Assembly: GCA_004431415.1 (NCBI GenBank)
Contig: QPMI01000519.1
Span: 248,001-312,000 of the forward strand
Reading direction: 5' to 3'
Length of the DNA stretch: 64,000 bases
Source of the DNA: Cyanophora paradoxa CCMP329
Taxonomy: Eukaryota; Plantae; Glaucophyta
Positions 50,680 through 64,000 of the stretch are shown piece by piece (position 1 is the stretch's first letter; every line of letters begins with the position of its first letter). Under the pieces are notes generated by a model. That model was given only the letters and a program-made list of their open reading frames with translations, searched no databases and was not told the DNA's origin. The translations under genes were made by a program, and so were the position numbers.

Positions 50680-53600
50680 ATGGCAGCGGAGCAGCGAGCC
50701 AGCTCTTTTCGTCGCGCCTCGAGCTCGCCGGTGGCGAGCCTTACGCGTCGGCTTTCGCTCGGCCGCTCCGCGCCGCCCGAAGATGGGCCAGAGCGACGTG
50801 TTTCCTACATTTACACGCCGACACCCGAGCCCGCGGCGCCAGCCCCGGCGCCGGCTCGGCTGCAGGCTCTGAGTGGCCCGCCGGCGGCCGCACTCGAGTC
50901 GGATTCGATCAGGCGACGCGCCAGCATTGCGAGCGCGAGCCTGAGCAACCGCCCCGGCGCCCTCAGCACGGGCTTCGCGTCCGCCTTCGGCCCTGCCGCA
51001 GCGATGGCCAACGGTCCGACTGGCGGGAAGGCGTGGCCGCCGCAGCACGTGACAGCGTTTGACCTTGGGGACCCCGACGGAGGCACAGCCGAGGCCCCCG
51101 CGTACGGCGCCGAGGGCCATGACGACGCCGAGAGCGTTTCCGTGCCGGAGCCGCTCGCCAAGTTCGCGTCGCGTGCCGGTGCCGGCTGGTCCTGGCCAAG
51201 GTGACCCCTTGCGAGATTCAGGCCTCCCGGGGTCCGGTCCTATGCCTGGGCTGACGTCGACCCCCGCCCCGCCCCCTCAGGCCTCCCAGCGGCAGGGAAA
51301 GGCGCCCCGGTCCGCCTCCCCGGGCGGACCCCGCAGACTATATATATATATTCGAGCTCCTCACACTGCGCGCGCGCGCGACGCAGAGTCCTCGATAGCG
51401 CTGGATGCCGGGGTCGTCACCGACTCGCCACCCGACGTTGGCATACCGGGATCGCCCCCCGGACCCGACGTTTTGACATTCCGCAACTTCACGCCGGCGC
51501 TGAACGCCCCCGCGCGGGCCTCGCGGGACGGCCGCGATCGCAACCGGGACCCAGCGTCGGGGCCGGCGCGGCGCGCCTCGACCTCGCGCTCGGGGTCGGG
51601 GTCGCGCCGGAGGAAGGGGCGGGCGGGGCGGCGCTCGCTGCGGGACGGCCTGCGCCAGTGGTGGGCCGACGTGCCCCTCAAGCGCAAGCAGCTCTCCGTC
51701 GTCCTCTTCCTCCAGGCCCGCCCCGCCGCCCCCGCCGCCCCCGCCCCCCGCGAGCTCCCCCGCCCCCGCCCCTGAGCCCCAGGCCCGCAGGCGCTCGCGT
51801 TCTGCGCGATGGTCGCCGTCTTCGCGGCGGTCTTCACGACGGCGCACACCTCGCAGCTCGTCGAGCAGGCGCGCAGCGAGATCCTCATGAACGACATGGT
51901 CTACGGTGCGGCCGCGCCACCGGCGTCGCGGCCCCGCTCGCAGCGCGCCGGCTTGCACCCCCTTGGCCTCCCCGCTCGGCCCCTCACCGCGGTCGCGCAG
52001 ACATCAAAGTGAACCAGATGGGTTTCGGCTACGCCGGTGCGCCCCGCGCCGCCTCTCCGGCCCCCGCAAACACCCGTGTCGAATGCTGATCAAATACCGC
52101 TCTGCCTGTTGCCCCTCCGGACCGCAGGGCAAGCGGAAAACGCGGATATTGTTGAGGCGGCGCGGCGGGGCCCCGCAGACGAGAGCGCGGCGGCAGCAGA
52201 GGCGCGGGCGCGGGCGAAAGCAGCGCTGGTGAACGAGATCGTCCGGCGCGAGATCGAGTGCGTCGCCTCTCGCGTTTAAATATGCAGCGCGCGATATTTG
52301 CGAGAGGCGCTATGGTTTCATCAAATAACTAGGTTTGAATTTCGAGCTGGTCTGATCGTGGCACGCCGCCCGTGGCGCCGCGCAGCGTGTCGAGTCTGGT
52401 GACGGCCGACGCGAAGGCGCCCGTCGTCATCGTGAGCAGCTTCCGGGACAGGCGCGGCGAGGCCCTCGGGCCGCGGCTCGCCGCCCTCGTCGCGCGCGCC
52501 ATCCAGCACAACAAACAGGCGCGGCCCGGCCGACATTCGCAACTCTGCTGCGCTCTCGTCGCGAGCCTCGGGGGCGCGCGTGCGCAGGTGCGGGTGACGG
52601 CGCTGGTCTCGAAGGAGGAGCTGGCGGCCGAGGGGGCGCCCATCTCCGAGCGCTGCCCGCCCCACGCCCTCGTCCGGCCCGTCCACCCTCTAAATTCCTC
52701 CCCGCCGAATAAATTCCGACGCCCGCCGCGCCGCGCAGGATCATCGTTACGCCGGCAAGCAGCAGCCCGCGCCCGAAGGCGCGCGCCGCTCGGACATTGA
52801 CGACGGCACGCGCGCGCGCGCATGCGCAGGTCTACGCGAGCGGGGACAAGTTCAAGCCCGTCGGCGTCCTCGTCGCCGCCGACGTCGTGCGCCCCGCCGT
52901 CGACGGAACTCGCTCGAAGTGCGCGCCGCGCCGCGCCGGGTCCGAGCGGCTGCGCAGGTGAACGGCAAGGGCGCCATTGTGCAGACCGCGATGGCCGCAT
53001 TCAAGTCGGGCCACGTCGCCAGTGCGCCCGCAGCGCTTCCTGCGCTCGAGCTCCCGCGCTCTAGGTCTTTGGCGCGCGCCTCAATTTTGCGGCAGTCTAT
53101 CAGCTGCGGACGCCCGGCTGCCCTCTCAACGACTACAGCTGCTACAGCCTCACCGTCGCCATGGGAGGTGCGGCCGCGCCGTCGGCGATGGTCCCAGCGG
53201 CGTGCACGTGCACGTACACCACGCGATCGCGAGCAGCGTCGCGTGGAGCGCGTGGGCGGTGCTGACGGCGCGGCCCTCGTCCCCGCAGAGGGCGACTCGG
53301 TCTTCCAGAGCAGCTCCCCGATCGAGGAGGCGGCGAAGGGCGTCCTCGTCGCCGCCGCCCGCGCCCCCGTCGCCAGCAGCAAGTCGGCCGCTTTCTACGT
53401 GCGCAGCCGCGCCGCTCTCACGCACCGGTTGTTGGCGTCGACGCCTCACGCTGCGAGGAACGGGCGGGGCGCAGGAGGGGAGCAGCGTGGGGGCGACGGT
53501 GACGGGGGAGATCACGGCGCGGGGCCAGGACTACACGGTGGCCGCCAGCTGCATCCTCGACGAGGGCGACAACGTCGTCGCCTTCCAGGCGCGCACACAT

Positions 53601-56600
53601 CCCGCAGCTGCAGTCGACGGCGCCTCTGACCGCCGGCGGCGGCGGCGGGGCGCAGGTGCGGGGGATGTCGCAGGCGCGGGGCCACGAGTTCCTGCGCAAC
53701 GGCATCGTCGTGTGCGCCGCGACGGGCGTCGCCCTCTTCGCCCTCTCCGCGGCCCTCGCGCTCTGGCTCGGGGGCACCATCCTGGAGCCCCTGCGCGCCC
53801 TCTACGAGGCCGTCGAGGACTTCTGGAACGGTGACTCCGAGCCCCCGCCCCCGCTCCTCGAATTCGACCGCACGTATAGACGCGCTTCCTGCCGGCCTCG
53901 CTGCGGTCCGCTGATCGTCGGCGCCGGGGCCGTCGGGGCGGGGGCAGACGAGTCGTCGATCTCATCGCGGCAGACGATGGGGCGGGCGTTCAGCCTGCGG
54001 GCGCAGGGGCGGGACGAGATCGGGCGCCTCACGGGCGCCTTCGGGCGCATGGCCTCCCGCATCAGCGAGGCCCGCCCCGCCCCGCCCGACCCGAGCCGCC
54101 GCCTCCGCCTCCCCGCGCTGGCTGACCGTCGCGCCATCGCTGCCCGCCCCGCGACACGCGCAGGCGTACTCGCGGATGCACGAGTCGCGGGTGAAGGCGG
54201 CCAACGAAGAGTACCGCACGCGCCTCATCATCGAGACCTCCAACGACGGTGCGCCGCGCGCCGCGCCCCCTTCACATTTCCTCCTTTGGCTCCAGCCTTT
54301 GCCGCGTCGCTCGGCCCCGCGAGCCCTGCCGACTCGCTTCCCTATCGCAGCCGTCTTCGTGATCGGGACGGACTGCGTGGTGCGCTGCCCGCCCTCCCCC
54401 GCGCCCCGCTCGCCCCCCGCCCGCCCCCCTCGAGCCGAGCCAAACGCGCCCGTGCGCGGCGGCAGGTGATCTCCTGCAACCACAGCGCCGTCCAAATGTT
54501 CGGGTACACCTCCGACGAGGTGCACGCCCCCCGTCCGACTCGCTCGGCCAGCGCGCCCCGCTCTGAGCAGCGGGGCCCCCAGCTCGTCGGCCAGAACGTG
54601 AACAAGATCATGCCCCCGGAGATCGCCGCCCAGCACGACTCCTACGTCAAGAAGTGAGTCTCGGGCCTTTGATTTCATAGCTGTACTGTAACATCGACAT
54701 TAGCTATCTATCGCGCTGACTGGCCGGATCTCGCGCGCGCGCGCGCAGGCGGGTGACGAGCGGGCGGACGCTGCAGTCGCGGTTCGCGATCGTGCAGGGG
54801 CAGCGGCGCACGGGCGAGGTCTTCCCCCTCGAGCTCTCCATCAGGTGGGCCCCGCAAGGGGGCACGGGCGCGCCCCCGGCCCCCGCTCGAGCCGCCCTCA
54901 CGCGCCCCGCAGCGAGATGAAGATCGGGGACGAGCACCTCTTCGTCGGCATGCTCCGCGGTCCGCGCGCCCTCCCCCGCCCCTGCCCCGCCCCGCCCCGC
55001 CCCGCCCCGCCGCTGTTTTAGCCCGCAGCTCGCTCGTCGCACTCCTCTGGCGTCCGATTCTTCCGCCCGAGCATCGCGAGCGACGTCTGACCTCGCGCCC
55101 CCCCGGCAGACATCACGGAGCGGAAGGAGATGGAGCGGCAGCTCGAGCGGGAGCGCCAGCGCGCCGAGAACCTCCTCAAGAACATGCTGCCCCCCTCGGT
55201 GAGCGAGCGCCGGCGCCGACCTCTTCACCGCGGGCGCTCGCCGCGCTGACGGGCCGCCCCGGGCAGATCGCGGAGCGGCTGAAGGACATGGCGGAGAGGG
55301 AGGCGGCCAAGGCGATGCGCTCCCGCCGCCAGTCCAAGGCCTACGGGCCGGGCTCCCCCATGTGCGCCTCCTCCTCGCCGCCTCTCGTCCCGGGTTGGGG
55401 TGGGGGGAGGCTGCCCGTGCTGACCGGCGCGCGCGTGGGGCGGCAGCGTCGGGAACGCGGCGCTCAACTCGGACGACGAGCTGGAGCCCCTCCCGGGCGC
55501 CCCGGGGCCCTCCTCCCGCCCGGGCCTCCACCGGGGCAGCCTGGACTCGAGCTCGAGCGGGCTGGGGCCGCGGGGCAGCCTGCGGAACATCGACCGGCAG
55601 CTGCTGGAGGGCGCCCTCACCATCGCCGACCGCTGCGACAATGTACCCGTCCTCTTCGCCGACATCGTGCGGGCCGCCTTCCCTTTCCAACCCTGCTCGA
55701 GGCCCGCCGGCCGCCCCCCGCTGAGGGGCCGGGCGCGCCTCCAGGTGAACTTCACGCCCCTCGCGAGCTCGATGGCCCCGGAGCGCCTCGTCCAGCTCCT
55801 CAACAGTGCGCGCGCCCCTGGCTACAGGCGCCTCCCCCGGCGCGGCCCGCTGAGGGGCCGGCCCCGCCCAGCTATCTTCATGGAGTTCGACGGCCTGGTG
55901 GAGCGGTTCGGCCTGGAGAAGATCAAGACGATAGGAGGTGCGGGGGCGAGGGCGGGAGGGGCCCCGCCGCCGCCGCCGCCGCGCCTCGCCCCGACGCGGC
56001 GCTCACCGCGGGGCGCCCCCGCGGCAGACGCGGTGATGATCGCCGGGGGCGTGCCCCCGGAGCTCCCGGGGGCCTTCCAGGCGCCCGAGAGCCGCAACAG
56101 CTCGGGGTCGGCGCGGCGCATGAACCGCGCGCGCCTCGCCTCCGGCGAGAGCGACCTCATCGACGCGCGCGCCGAGCCGCCCATCGTCCGCATGGCGGTG
56201 CCCCCTCTCTGTCCTTCCCTCCCTTGCCTCTCGGCCGAGCGCGCGCGCCGCGCAGCGCCTGGCGATCGCGATGCAGGAGTCGATCGCGCGGTTCAAGGGC
56301 GCCGACGGGCAGTCCTTCCGCATCCGCATCGGCATGCACGTCGGCACCGTCATCGCCGGCGTCATCGGCAAGCGCAAGATCATGTACGACCTCTGGTGCG
56401 CGGCGCCGTCCCCCCGTACCCCCATCCCCTTCCGCCCCCCGGCGCTGCCCGGGTCTCATCGGCCGTCTTCGTAGGGGGGACACCGTCAACATAGCGTCGA
56501 GGTCCGGACCGGCCCCACGGCGCGTCCCTCGGCGCGCGGGGCGGGCACTGATGGGCGGGCGGGCCGGGGGTGCAGGATGGAGTCCTCGGGCGAGCCGGGC

Positions 56601-58984
56601 CGGACGCAGGTCTCCGAGGAGTGCTTCGCCATCCTCAAGGGCAAGTTCGCGTTCGAGGTGCGCCCGTACCCCCCGCCCCACTCGTCCCCCGCCCCGGTCG
56701 CCACCCCCCCGCGCCCCGCGCCGCGCGGCATGGCCCGACGGGGCGGCGGGGCGCAGGACCGGGGCACGATCTTCGTGAAGGGGAAGGGGGAGCTGCACAC
56801 GTACTTCCTGCTGAGCGCGCGGGGCCCCGGGGCCGCCAGCGATCGCCGCCTCCCGGACTTCTCCTCCGTCCTCCGCGCCCCCGAGGACCAGCACCCCATG
56901 CAGATCACCGTCCGCCGCGCCTCCGCCCTCACGGTACCCCCCCCCCCCCCCCCCCCGCCCTTCCCCTGATTGAGCCCCGCTAGGTTGGATCCGAGGCGGA
57001 AGAGGAGGAGAGGGGCAGGGATGCAGAGCGGGAGGGCAGCGTCATCCGGAGCCTCGAGTCGGTCCGCGGGCCCCCATGCCCAACTCGGCGTTCAGCCCCT
57101 TCTCGGAGCTCATCGATACCCTCCTCCACCCCGCAGATCGGCCCCGATCTCGAGGGCGTCGATTTCACGGTGTGGAGGTACCCCCCATCTGCTCTCCCCC
57201 AGCTCGTCCGGACCATGCTCGACCGCCTTGGGGTACGTGCACGCGCTCGCGCTTCCGATCTGATCCCGTACCCCCCTCACACCCGCTTTCGCCGCAGCTC
57301 ATCAGCGCATGCAAGATCAGGACGCAGGAGCTCAGCGCGTTCATAGAGATCGCCCTCTGCTCCTACAGCGAGAAGAACCCGTTCCACGTGCGAGGCCGAT
57401 CAAATCTGAGCGGGCCCCGCGCGGATTCGAACCCGGGCTCTCAGGACGCGTTCCACGCGGCGGACGTGATGCAGTTCGTGTACTGCTGCCTGACGACCGT
57501 CGTGCGGGGCCGGTGCGGCCTTTGCTCCGAGCTAAGCTGGTGGAGCTATAGCTAAGCGGGCGGGCCTCGCCCGGGGTGCAGGGGAAACCGGAGCCCGCGG
57601 AGCCCAGTGCTGATGGGCGCCCCCTCGAGCTCCTCGTCGGGGCCCTCGCCGTCGGCCCCCGGCTCGGCGCGGCGCTCGCAGCAGCCGGCGGCGGCCGTCC
57701 TCCGGGAGCTCGACCACGTCGACATGCTCGCCCTCCTCGTCGCCGCCCTCTGCCACGGTGCCCCCTCCCTCTCCCTTCCTTTTCCCTCCTTCTCCCTCCT
57801 CTCGCTGAGGGCGGGGTGTCTCAGACCTGGAGCACCCGGCGGTGTCGAACGCGTTCCTGGTGCGGACGCGGGCGCCGATGGCGCTGACGTACGCGAACTC
57901 GTCGCCGCTGGAGCGGCACCACGCCTTCCGCTGCCTGGCGCTGCTCGAGCGCAAGGACCTCGACATCGCCGCCGGCCTCCTCCCCGAGCAGCGCGCCCGC
58001 TTCACCCAGGCCCGCCCCCGCCCCCGGCCCCGCGCCCCGCCCCCTCCACCCCGCCCCTAACCCTCCAAGAGCCATTCGCAACTCTTGGCCCGCCCGCCCC
58101 GCGCCGCCTTGGCCTCGCTGACGTGTCGAGCGCCCGCAGCTGGTGCTGGACACGATCCTGGCGACGGACATGACCCTCCACGGCGAGTACATGACCGCCG
58201 TCCGCGCCCGCTTCGCCCCGGTGCGCCCCGAGCCACCCAGCGATCGCGAGCCTAGCCTCGGCTGGCCAGGGCACGCTCCCCAGAGCCCGCGCCCTCCATC
58301 CCCCTCCGCCTCGACTCGAGCCTAGTCTCGCTCGCCCTCCGCGCGGGCCGGCCCGGCGGGCCTGACGGGGGGGGGCAGGGGGAGGGCGGGCACGGGCACG
58401 GGGCGGCGGAGCCTGCGCGCTCCCGCTTCTCCCACCTCGACGACCGCACCCTCCTACTCGGCCTCCTAATCAAGGTACCCCACCCCCCCCCCCCCCCCCC
58501 GAACCGCCGCGGCTCAGCTTATCGTTCCCTTCCGCTTCCGCAGTGCGCCGACCTCGCGAACGGCTCTCGAGGCTTCGAAAACTCTCGCCACTGGGCCGAG
58601 CGCATCCAGCTCGAGTTCTTCGGTGCGCACGTACCCCCCGCCCTCGGATCCCCCCGCCCGATCCCCCGCGGCAGAGCAAGGGGCGCTGGAGGCGGAGCTG
58701 GGGCTTGACGTCACGCCGGGCTTCCTGGACAACGGCGAGCCGGAGCTGCTCAACGCCACCCGCCAGGTACCCCCACGCGAATGGCGGTACCCCCCCTTTC
58801 ATCTGACCCTTCTCCCCCGCAGGTGGGCTTCCTGTCGGCGGTGACGGTGCCGCTCTTCGAGACGCTGGCGGGCCTGGTGCCCGAGGTCGGGAGCGAGTTC
58901 GCCGCCAACGCGCGCGCCAACGTCGCCCGCTGGCGCGAGGCCGCCGACGCCCTCCGCTCCAAGTCCCTCCTCAAGCCCTCCTGA
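50680..58984 (+). CDS. Multidomain receptor: TM-extracellular sensor-TM-HAMP-PAS-adenylyl cyclase (class III)-cyclic nucleotide phosphodiesterase (class I)
   Basis: TM1 about 51690-51850. Sensor DIKVNQMGFGYA/GQAENA...VGVLVAADV/VNGK. TM2 about 53700-53780. HAMP EPLRAL...RDEIGRLTGAFGRM. PAS NHSAVQMFGYTSDE/LVGQNVNKIMP...GEVFPLELSI...FVGMLR/DITERK. Cyclase VLFADI/VNFT...EKIKTIG/DAVM...IRIGMHVG...YDLW/GDTVNIASR/MES...VKGKG. PDE NPFH/DAFHAADV...ALCH/DLEHPAVSN...LERHH...ILATDM...IK/CADLAN...EFF/EQG...Q/VGFL. TGA at 58982-58984. Confidence 0.93.
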
Positions 58985-60298: not shown

Positions 60299-63200
60299 AT
60301 GGCAGCCACGGCGCGAGAAGAGCCGCAGGGCAGTAGTAGCCCTGCGCTACAACCATCCGCGCCATCTGCGGCGAGCTCGGCGCTCATTCAGCGAGTAGAC
60401 TCCTTGCTCTCCACATTGGTGCCGAACAAGTGGACCGAATACAGCAGATTGCACGTGTTCAACTATGTCAAGTCGATCCTCGTTCGCGTCTTCCCAAACG
60501 TGACGGTGAGCTGCCTGGGTCGCTTTCGTATATGGAGCGCCAAGAGCGCCCGGGCGTGGCGGAGCTTCTGGACCAGTCGATAGGCCGAATCGCCCCGCGC
60601 GGGGCGGGCACGCTAGCCGCGCACCTTGCACGGTCCGCGCACAGGCCTTACGCGGTGCTGCAGGTCCTGCAGTTCGGCTCCGTGCCGCTGAAGACATATC
60701 TGCCTGACGGTGACATCGACGTTGGCTTCTTCGGCCTGCGCCTCGAGGAGGACTGGCCCCTCCGCCTCAAGAGCGCCATCGAGCGTGACGCGGCCAACCA
60801 GCAGAAGCTAGGCCATCCGCTGAAAGATGTAGCGTGCATCTTCGCCGAGGTGTGATTGTTGCCTCCGAGCACGCGGCCCCGGCGCTCCCATTCGCCGCTC
60901 ATGACGATCTCTCCGTTGCCTGAGCTCGCCCGCGCAGGTGAAGGTCGTGAAGTGCATCTTGGGCACGATCATGGTGGACATTAGCTCAAATCAAACGGCC
61001 GGTCTCTGCACTTTGTGCTTCTTCGAGGAGGCGAGCCCACCGTCTGCTGAATCTCGCCACTCGTGCTAACGGTGGCGCGCCGCTTTCCGCTTAGGTCGAC
61101 CGCCTGATTGACAAAGACCACCTGTTTAAGAGGAGCGTCATATTGATCAAGGCGTGGTGCTACTACGAGAGCAGGATACTTGGTTCGCAGATGGGTCTGA
61201 TTTCGACCTACGCGCTGGAGACACTCGTGCTTTACATTTTCAACCGGTTTAACGATTCTTTGCATTATCCTATCGATGTTCGTGCATCGCCCCTCACGTA
61301 GAGCCGCTTGCGGCGGGCAACCTCCGCGGTTGCCGATGCTCGTTTGAACGTGCAGGTCCTCTATCGTTTCTTGGAGGAATTCAGCCAGTTCGATTGGGAG
61401 AAGTACGCGATTTCTATATGGGGCCCGATCGAGATTGGAGCGCTGCGGAACCTGCCTCGTGCGCCGCACCCCACGCCCCTCGCATCTCTTTCCTTCCTTT
61501 TCTGACCGGCGCCCGGGGGCCCGCGCGGCGTCTCAGTGCCGGAGCGGGCGTCGTGGGAGGTTGCGGAAGGCAAGGAGCCGCCGATCACGTCCAAGTTCAT
61601 GACGTACATGCGGAGCATCTACACGGACTCGTTCGAGCGCCTCGGGGCCAACCGCCCGCACTACAAGCGACCGTCCGCGCCCCGCCCCGCCCCGCCCCGC
61701 CGCTCGCGCCGCCGCCGCCGCAGCGCTGACGCCGTGGCGCGCAGGGAGCAGCGGCAGTTCATGCTCAAGCACATGAACGTGGTGGACCCGCTCGTCCCCC
61801 ACAACAACCTCGGGCGCTCCGTATCCTTGTCCAACCTCGCGAGGATACGGAGTGCCCTCGGGCTGGGCCGGCAGCAGCTCGCCTCGGTCCTCGACAAGGC
61901 GGCCCCCGAGGCGGCCGCTGCCCTGGACCAGTTCTTCACGTCGACGCATCGTCGGCTCCGAGGGGACGTCTGGAGCCGCTCGGACCTTGCTGGGATCCAC
62001 CACCTGTGGAACTACGAGCGGTCCATGCTCTACTCGCTCGCGGTCACGGCCTCGGCCGCTCCCGCGCACGCCACCGCGACAGCCGCGGCGGCCGCAGCAG
62101 CAGCAGCGAACGCGCACATCGCTCGCATCCTGGCCGCCGCCTCTGCGGCGCACCTCCCCGCTCTTCTTCACCAACAGCAGGCCGCCGCAGCCGCCTACCT
62201 CCAGGCCTACGGGACTCTCCCCTCTTCCGCCTCCTCCGCCTCCTCCGCGTCCGCCGCCGCTGCCGTCCAGCCGGCCGCCCCCGCGCTCCCTTCCCCGTCC
62301 TCCCGGGGCGCGGCCGAGGCGGCGCGCGCGGCGGTCCTCTCTGCGATCGACGCGGCGGCGGCGGCGGCCTCGGGCGAAGGCGAGGCCTCGGGCAAGGGCG
62401 CTGGGGGCGAGCAGGCGCACCCGCCCGGCGCCGAGCACGCGCACTGGCACGGGCGCAACGGCGCCGTCAAGCCCCATCCGCAGCCGGCCTCCCCGCGGCC
62501 CGCCCGCGCCCTCCCGCGCCCCTGCCCCCTCCGGCCCCGGCTCCCCGGCGGCGCCTCCTCCTCCTCGGGCCGTCGCCCCGCCCCTGCCGGTCGTCCCCGC
62601 CCCGCCCACGGGCCCGCCCCCGCGCCCCCTCCGAGAGCTCTATCCCCGAAGAGCCGCCCATCCTCTTCGGCTCCGTGGACCCCGCCGAGCTCGCGAACGT
62701 CGTACCCCCTCCCTCCCGCCTCCCCGGCCTCCTCCTCCGCCTCCGGGCCTCCTCCGCTCGCCCCCGCCTGCGCCCGGCGCGCCGCGACCCCCCACCTCGC
62801 CCCGACGGCGGCCCCCGCCGCCCGCCCCAGCGCCGGCGCCGGCGGCGGCGCGAGGACCGGCACGTCGTCGCCGGCCTCGCGTGCCTCGGTCACCAGCCCG
62901 GGGCTGCAGGGGAGCTCTTCGGGGGAAGGGCCCCCCGAGGCGCGGCTGCCCCCCGCCGCCCAGCCGAGCGCCCCGTCCCTGTCCATCCACCTCCCCACGC
63001 CGCCTCACACCCCCGTCGTGCCCCTGCCCCGCTCCCCCGCCGCCTACCCCCACGGCTGGGAGGCCGATCCGCTCGCTGCCGCCGCCCGCCTCGCCATAAG
63101 GCACGCCCAGCAGCAGGCGGCGCAGCAGCAGCAGCAGCAGCCGGGGATCGTACCCCTGCAGCAGCCGCACCCCGTGCAGGCGGCGGCCTCCCAGATGCAG

Positions 63201-63889
63201 CAGGGGTACCTGGAGTACGGCCCCTCGGGGGCGGCGTCGCCCATGCCCCTGCCCTCGCCCTCGGCCTCGCCGGCCCCGCTCCCCGCGGCGCCCTCGCCGG
63301 TGCCGGCGCTGGCGCAGCAGCCCCTGGCGCCGCTCCTCTCGTCGATGCTGGAGAACATCCAGGGGCCCTTCACCTCGGCCTCGGGCGGCGCCGAGCGCGC
63401 CGACTACCTCGCCTCCGACCTCAAGGCCCGCCCTCTTCCCGCTCCGATCCGCGCCCCCCGCCGCGCCCCGCTCATCCTCCCTCGCTCGCGCGCGCGCAGG
63501 GGCTCCGCCAGAACGTCGAGCACCTGCAGACGATGTTCGCGCGGCGCGAGGGGCCCCCGACCTCCTCCCCCTCGGGCGGCGGCGGCGGCGGCGGGTACCG
63601 CCACGACCGGAGCATGACGCCCCCGCCCAGCGGCGCCCACGCTGGCTACGGAGGCGGCGGCGGCGGGGGGGGCGGCTACGGACGCGGGGGCGGCAACTAC
63701 TACAGCCCGCAGGGGCAGTACGCCCGCGGCGGGGGCGATCGCTGGGCCTCGCAGGGCGGCGGCTCGCGGGGCGGGCCCCGAGGAGGCCAGTGGGGCGACG
63801 GCGGCGACGCCCAGGGCGGCTACCGCAGGGTGCCGCCCCAGCAGATGCAGCAGCAGCAGCAACAACAACACCAGCAGCAACACCAGCAA

Positions 63890-63934
<45 letters not shown>

Positions 63935-64000
63935 CCGATGCCGCAACCGCTGCAGCCGATGCCCCAACCCGCCGATCAGCAGCAGCCACAGCAGCAACAG
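60299..64000 (+). CDS. Pol-beta-superfamily nucleotidyltransferase with PAP/OAS1 substrate-binding-like domain and long low-complexity tail; runs off the window
   Basis: FGSVPLKTYLPDGDIDV (hG[S]...DxD motif), AEVKVVKC...VDIS, HLFKRSVILIKAWCYYESRILG...GLISTYALETLVLYIF, VLYRFLEEFSQFDWEKY and NVVDPLVPHNNLGRSVS. These match the plant/algal PAP-OAS1-like NTase family. Confidence 0.93.
63838..64000 (+). repeat. CAG/CAA microsatellite encoding polyglutamine
   Basis: Long cagcagcag/caacaa run, in frame with the NTase tail. Confidence 0.9.

Follow-up and report, generated by a model that had tools for sequence, protein, structure and literature searches.

A Cyanophora paradoxa gene joins a cyanobacterial-type double Cache sensor and a FixL-like PAS domain to a predicted adenylyl cyclase and a phosphodiesterase in one chain

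Overview

The DNA analysed here (the window) is a stretch of 64,000 nucleotides from the glaucophyte Cyanophora paradoxa CCMP329 (contig QPMI01000519.1, positions 248,001 to 312,000). Fourteen DNA sequencing runs contain this stretch nearly entire, and it may derive from one or more of them. On its plus strand, at 50680-58984, lies a real spliced gene for one membrane protein that joins sensory domains to a cyclase and a phosphodiesterase (PDE). By alignment and structure model the sensor is a double Cache domain of the cyanobacterial chemoreceptor type, and the PAS domain that follows it probably binds haem. The residues of the cyclase support an adenylyl-type class III enzyme, predicted to make cyclic AMP (cAMP), and residues and fold together support an intact class I PDE. 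Fusions able in principle to make and break one messenger are already known from diatoms and streptophytes, and the novelty here is on the input side, in the cyanobacterial sensor and the probable haem PAS.

Gene structure and transcript evidence

Exon-by-exon reading gave a frame of 43 exons, with 1606 codons and a stop (4821 nt) and without internal stops. The 42 introns measure 50-158 nt and all end in AG, while the donors are GT in 35 cases and GC in seven, a high share. By using one PDE exon as the query, a sequence search returned a 100% match to the protein EukProt EP00741 P017191 (P0022 below), which is the C. paradoxa model tig00020960_g16603.t1 of 1499 amino acids (aa). This independent model has the same exons as the reconstruction, with two differences: it starts at 51004, where the reconstruction uses an in-frame ATG at 50680, and its exon 9 deviates slightly. 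P0022 served as the query in the whole-protein searches, and residue numbers throughout are those of this record. Along P0022 the order is a first transmembrane helix (TM1, 180-198), ectodomain, TM2 (514-532), HAMP (534-595), PAS (614-727), signalling helix, cyclase (846-1059) and PDE core (1186-1468), and Pfam recognized HAMP weakly (E 4e-4), PAS_9 at E 2e-14, Guanylate_cyc at E 2e-53 and PDEase_I at E 4e-56. An earlier sequence-only reading of this DNA had proposed that the exons splice in frame into a single chain, from a two-TM sensor through HAMP, PAS and a complete class III cyclase into a class I PDE; the reconstruction, which matches the public model, and the Pfam and TM predictions bear this out.

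The same reading had placed the cyclase-PDE junction at a phase-0 GT-AG intron (56934-56983) and had supposed one transcript across it, and both points were confirmed. If retained, this intron would bring an in-frame stop after 11 codons. The RNA comparison covered the gene 3' of ~53000 in separate contigs, none spanning the entire gene, and GT-AG joints at predicted introns were seen in four RNA runs from two studies. One RNA contig (X16 record 8) joins cyclase and PDE exons, covering 56823-56928 in the last cyclase exon together with 57136-57231 and 57297-57387 in the PDE exons. Its first and second pieces are separated by 82 unlisted letters, the length expected after splicing (5+77), whereas retention would give 132; the evidence for splicing at this point is length arithmetic, because a poly-C repeat at the donor was masked in the comparison and the joint itself was left unlisted. 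In X15, X16 and X17, which come from two studies, the genome match starts at the acceptor (56983/4). It is thus supported that cyclase and PDE exons share one spliced transcript. That two adjacent genes were joined by gene prediction alone has hardly any probability left: although the gene is not covered end to end by any one RNA contig, a spliced contig bridges the junction, the same fusion is found in three paralogous models, and the domains are separated by nothing more than a 50-nt intron, with no stop between them. Two neighbouring genes were therefore rejected.

Upstream of the public start, 50680-51003 would encode an in-frame N-terminal extension of 108 aa that is absent from the public model, with a Phe at position 10 and four RRxS sites of the protein kinase A (PKA) consensus. 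These four compare with 0.30 expected, and none of 2000 shuffles reached four; no RRxS enrichment was found within P0022 itself (p 0.33), so it is confined to the extension. With an in-frame ATG upstream, the public model may begin too far downstream.

The sensor

The sensor opens with TM1 (51698-51829), which is interrupted by a GC-AG intron and has basic residues N-terminal to the helix. It is followed by the double Cache ectodomain (residues 199-513; 51830-53703), assigned by alignment and structure model to a cyanobacterial taxis-receptor family, by TM2 (53704-53760), and by a HAMP domain with a lengthened connector (53764-54066), whose exon, when searched alone in Pfam, gave E 3.5e-5. From TM1 to HAMP the protein aligns over its full length with cyanobacterial taxis receptors, at ~30% identity over 384 aa. 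A DNA pattern for a nine-residue motif of exon 5 had 56 matches in 185,579 prokaryote genomes, 51 of them labelled cyanobacteria; among the remaining five, one is a chance match, one belongs to a Sericytochromatia genome and three fall inside cyanobacterial clades. The contigs that carry these three receptors (L007, L042 and L048, labelled Acetobacteraceae, Tatlockia and Parcubacteria) are probably misbinned, and two of the receptors are nearly identical to their cyanobacterial neighbours. The motif-bearing cyanobacterial proteins are methyl-accepting chemotaxis proteins (MCPs), GAF-MCPs and histidine kinases, and one that was checked sits in a PatA-CheY-CheW-MCP operon. No PAS or cyclase domain was found in 137 cyanobacterial open reading frames with this ectodomain, some of which are cut by contig ends.

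The ectodomain model, with a predicted local distance difference test (pLDDT) score of 88, shows, between the TM helices, a long N-terminal helix with two PAS-like modules, which is the layout of a double Cache domain. Its top PDB matches were TlpA, LuxQ, PctA and DctB, and its fold resembles that of chemoreceptor ligand-binding domains. A dCache_3 match was obtained in 16 of the 24 rows of the ectodomain alignment; the Cyanophora ectodomain itself had no Pfam or NCBIfam match, and a plasmid search with it gave none. A word-indexed search returned two proteins only and carries little information on range. The four Atlas clusters nearest to the model were cyanobacterial (template-modelling score 0.80-0.83), a result that leans this way because cyanobacterial rows went into building the model. 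P0022 and its paralogue P0175 have an added Cys pair in their ectodomains that is absent from the cyanobacterial ones, and one of these two algal ectodomains carries an N-glycosylation sequon.

The PAS domain and the signalling helix

The PAS domain (54215-55120) is FixL-like, with FixL as its best solved match (E 3e-23) and DosP as the next. His670 (54634-54636) aligns with the FixL haem ligand, His194/His200 (PMC10765370), and this alignment suggests that the domain probably binds haem. The distal Arg of FixL, which holds bound O2, is replaced by Ala689 (54786-54788), as also in chain 1y28, and it is kept in the paralogues P0175 and P0028. The title of a study cited in PMC10765370 describes this Arg as essential for ligand binding and for signalling. 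An Arg two places before Ala689 might substitute for it, and the proximal Arg of FixL is replaced by Lys. The segment behind the PAS (55121-55287) comprises a putative signalling helix and a cyclase transducer with an HNOBA tail; its length and register are as in cyanobacterial PAS-cyclase receptors, and it aligns without gaps to the receptors of Roseofilum and Allocoleopsis.

The two enzymes

The cyclase domain (55628-56813) was assigned through Pfam, residue alignment and fold. All seven of its catalytic residues (D857, K897, D901, D1002, N1009, R1013 and K1048) are adenylyl-type, and those that the sequence-only reading had named are among them: the two metal Asp and the transition-state Asn and Arg are present on a Guanylate_cyc fold, and the ATP-specifying pair K897 and D1002 is that of cyanobacterial and animal adenylyl cyclases (ACs). 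At the same two places, cyclase-PDE fusions from Nitzschia and from an environmental record have Glu and Gln/Cys. A guanylyl cyclase (GC) was rejected on the K897/D1002 pattern. When the intron-containing cyclase frame was used as the query, only weak bacterial cyclase matches appeared.

Between the enzymes lies a linker (56814-57151) with ~35 residues predicted to be disordered and one RRxS site, and it differs in length and sequence among the paralogues. The PDE domain (57158-58888) retains H1187, H1191, H1268, D1269, E1298, H1300, T1339, D1392, N1395, Q1446 and F1449, which we take, by PDE4D numbering, to include the catalytic His, the four metal ligands, the Mg-water residues, an Asn, the invariant Gln and the Phe clamp; the earlier expectation that metal ligands and Gln were kept agrees with the alignment. 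Against solved class I PDEs the PDE model reaches a template-modelling score of 0.92 at best and ~0.9 generally. In the AlphaFold model both enzyme folds exceed pLDDT 90, and the predicted template-modelling score (pTM) of 0.57, together with the unstructured linker, suggests that cyclase and PDE have no fixed packing.

Comparison with known systems

The claim that this architecture had not been described was too strong. In 2016 a receptor of the diatom Seminavis robusta was published in which two TM helices precede a GC and then a PDE, and it was proposed to be ligand-gated (PMC4726125). The diatom GC/PDE proteins, that one (PMC4726125) and P0183 of Nitzschia, thus resemble Cyanophora in combining two TM helices, a class III cyclase and a class I PDE in a single chain. 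They differ in having guanylyl-type residues where Cyanophora has adenylyl-type ones, and the catalytic parts are ~25% identical; Pfam finds neither HAMP nor PAS in Nitzschia P0183, and its ectodomain could not be aligned with that of Cyanophora. P0183 (Nitzschia sp. Nitz4) consists of two tandem 2TM-GC-PDE units, and annotation may have fused two separate genes here. Besides Nitzschia, further proteins with a cyclase followed by a PDE were found in Ancoracysta and in one environmental record. The Ancoracysta twista protein (P0208, EukProt EP00164) has a multi-TM AC and a pseudo-PDE from which the invariant Gln and two of the metal ligands are missing. The environmental one (P0228, ENA ERZ1426818, on an 18,959-nt contig) is an unbroken frame of 1751 aa with a multi-TM guanylyl-type cyclase and a class I PDE, and its gene adjoins an aldehyde/alcohol dehydrogenase gene. 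Two JGI models have other arrangements: P0089 carries cyclase, AAA, PDE and WW domains in one chain, and P0122 has a PDE, an ion-transport-like TM part and a weak cyclase, which is a CAPE-like order.

CAPE itself is the streptophyte fusion, for which AC and PDE activities have both been shown and which controls sperm flagella (PMC5159850, PMC11032487). It occurs in streptophytes with motile sperm (PMC8115329) and is known in liverworts. Its order, PDE-TM-AC, with the TM part between the enzymes and without Cache, HAMP or PAS, is the reverse of that in Cyanophora, as the sequence-only reading had it. Membership in CAPE was rejected on this reversed order and on the glaucophyte host.

On the bacterial side, the closest in layout are cyanobacterial dCache_1-HAMP-PAS-AC receptors (Roseofilum P0186 and its relatives), which have the TM1-to-cyclase order and the PAS-to-cyclase helix in common with Cyanophora. 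The Roseofilum cyclase is 47% identical to that of Cyanophora and stands as its sister group in two quick trees, but these receptors have no PDE, a different Cache subfamily and two PAS domains unlike that of FixL. Taxis receptors of the PixJ/PilJ type and related histidine kinases of cyanobacteria have the TM1-ectodomain-TM2-HAMP part in common with Cyanophora at ~30% identity; they end in an MCP or kinase, often after GAF, whereas Cyanophora ends in cyclase and PDE. FixL oxygen sensors share the proximal His of the PAS, but their output is a kinase and not a cyclase, and they have Arg at the distal place where P0022 has Ala. Bacterial sensor-HAMP-PAS-GGDEF-EAL hybrids are also built from input modules followed by the synthase and then the hydrolase of one second messenger. 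The messenger there is cyclic di-GMP and not cAMP, and EAL is unrelated to class I PDE, so that the likeness is an analogy only.

A literature search covering few subscription journals found no description of a glaucophyte cyclase-PDE family, and the Cyanophora genome paper contains no mention of cyclase, phosphodiesterase or cAMP (PMC6704402). A sensor and PAS input had been recognized in the sequence-only reading and is present; three things had escaped it, namely the double Cache type of the sensor with its cyanobacterial chemoreceptor relatives, the resemblance of the PAS to FixL, and the membership of the gene in a small family.

Paralogues and origin

Cyanophora has at least three further cyclase-PDE genes (P0175, which is complete, P0028 and P0023) and a PDE-only model, P0024. 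Paralogues share the whole chain with P0022 (43% identity over 1470 aa), and the Cyanophora paralogues form one clade in both the cyclase and the PDE tree, with 99-100 in the Shimodaira-Hasegawa-like approximate likelihood-ratio test (SH-aLRT). These are quick trees with SH-aLRT support; the cyclase set is biased to near matches, and in a smaller cyclase tree long branches and near-duplicates were left out.

Among the best 120 matches of the cyclase-PDE search, all named bacterial ones are cyanobacterial. The algal cyclases are sister to the dCache-HAMP-PAS cyclase of Roseofilum (SH-aLRT 87 and 91), apart from the proteobacterial ones, which favours, with moderate support, a cyanobacterial source for the cyclase; proteobacterial cyclases reach a similar identity to the Cyanophora cyclase (46% vs 45-51%). 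The ectodomain falls outside the sampled cyanobacterial set, which was picked by motif. For the PDE the named relatives are eukaryotes only, and the nearest row is a CAPE-like protein (SH-aLRT 90). Overall, the comparisons suggest that the sensor derives from cyanobacterial receptors, that the cyclase probably does likewise, and that the PDE belongs to a eukaryotic family.

The earlier claim of independent assembly is likely with respect to the diatom fusion, since the diatom, Ancoracysta and environmental fusions are placed apart from Cyanophora in the best trees. It is unproved, as approximately unbiased (AU) tests leave a grouping of Cyanophora with Nitzschia, represented by one long-branched diatom row, unrejected (p-AU 0.54 for the cyclase, 0.46 for the PDE). 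A wider scenario is offered more tentatively: a third independent origin of a make-and-break protein, in which a taxis-receptor Cache sensor and a PAS-cyclase unit from the cyanobacterial endosymbiont met a host class I PDE and the product expanded into a small family whose members vary in gas sensing (Arg or Ala in the haem pocket), with both enzymes under two-input control, is possible but falls short of what we would favour. No ortholog from other glaucophyte genera appeared in the searches, a blank made weak by length limits and fragmentary transcriptomes.

Downstream in the window, at ~60500-64000 on the plus strand, lies a neighbour that resembles a nucleotidyltransferase of the non-canonical poly(A) polymerase type, with a long low-complexity tail (weak NTP_transf_2, E 0.03); no sign of a connection between this neighbour and the receptor gene was seen.

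Proposed mechanism and alternatives

The reading that we favour, with modest confidence, is a homodimeric surface receptor that would produce a short-lived local cAMP signal, its PDE acting as a tethered and largely constitutive sink. From what is known of the families, a small outside ligand would bind the double Cache domain, and the signal would pass from TM2 through HAMP, PAS and signalling helix to the cyclase pair. The cyclase would be active as a homodimer, because each chain holds all seven catalytic residues. The PAS, if it binds haem as is probable, would let gas or redox state set the gain, and since Ala stands at the distal Arg, that of P0022 is probably a weaker O2 sensor than those of the paralogues. 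The PDE on its flexible linker would limit the spread and duration of cAMP, most likely as a constitutive sink, and PKA feedback on RRxS sites perhaps tunes that sink; four such sites in the unconfirmed upstream extension and one in the linker are a hint in this direction. The cAMP pulses or microdomains foreseen in the sequence-only reading would follow from such an arrangement, and the likely use would be to steer flagellar motility or another fast response.

Several results weigh against parts of this account. The cyanobacterial nesting of the cyclase has only SH-aLRT 87-91 in quick trees. Adenylyl cyclases of the plastid-free euglenid Entosiphon sulcatum are headed by the same ectodomain (profile E 3e-52 and 3e-43), which is thus not confined to plastid bearers; in P0301 / P0178 of this species (EukProt EP01012) a single predicted chain carries the unit of double Cache sensor, HAMP and cyclase twice. 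The structure was modelled as a monomer on a mixed alignment, which leaves room for contacts between cyclase and PDE in a dimer. Such contacts are the core of a reciprocal switch, in which the input would activate the cyclase while silencing the PDE, or do the opposite, much as happens in certain GGDEF-EAL and RelA/SpoT proteins of bacteria. In its favour, at least four Cyanophora genes retain the fusion, a constitutive futile cycle would presumably cost ATP, and a helix preceding the PDE core has fair model confidence; with a linker that is predicted to be disordered and variable among paralogues, and no interface predicted in the monomer, we nevertheless consider the switch unlikely.

The PDE raises its own doubts. 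Directly after the catalytic His, Asp1188 replaces the Asn of nearly all relatives, among the paralogues only in P0022, and PDE4 (cAMP) and PDE9 (cGMP) tie as the best solved matches, so that the substrate is not safely readable from sequence. Both points would suit a receptor AC whose PDE is weak, prefers cGMP or merely binds nucleotide, leaving the product of its own chain intact, and the Ancoracysta fusion, with two metal ligands lost, shows that such PDEs can decay. Yet P0022 retains every metal ligand, the Phe clamp and the invariant Gln, Asn is kept at the place of PDE4 Asn321, and the Ser at the place of PDE4 Tyr329 recalls, as we presume, the cAMP-specific PDE7; we rate this alternative slightly below the switch. 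A location in the cyanelle envelope, with the Cache domain in its ancestral place in a retained periplasm and the receptor controlling organelle cAMP, is very improbable. The longer N-terminus, rich in Ser, Ala and Arg, has its Phe at position 10, and a Phe in the first 10 residues is a mark of cyanelle transit peptides (PMC4510345). However, the N-terminus of paralogue P0175 is acidic with its first Phe at 35, ~285 residues precede TM1, and the Cys pair gained in both algal ectodomains and the one N-glycosylation sequon fit a secretory route.

Significance

The gene contributes another example of a predicted synthase and hydrolase fused in one chain, and it illustrates how sensing parts of bacterial type can be put to use in the cAMP signalling of a eukaryote, here an alga that bears a plastid and branched off early. 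With the cyclase as the read-out, the ligand of this cyanobacterial Cache family should be easy to screen for. The protein also offers a compact system for asking how a PDE attached to its cyclase acts, by shaping cAMP locally or by being switched along with the cyclase, which is the same question that CAPE and the diatom GC/PDE receptors pose.

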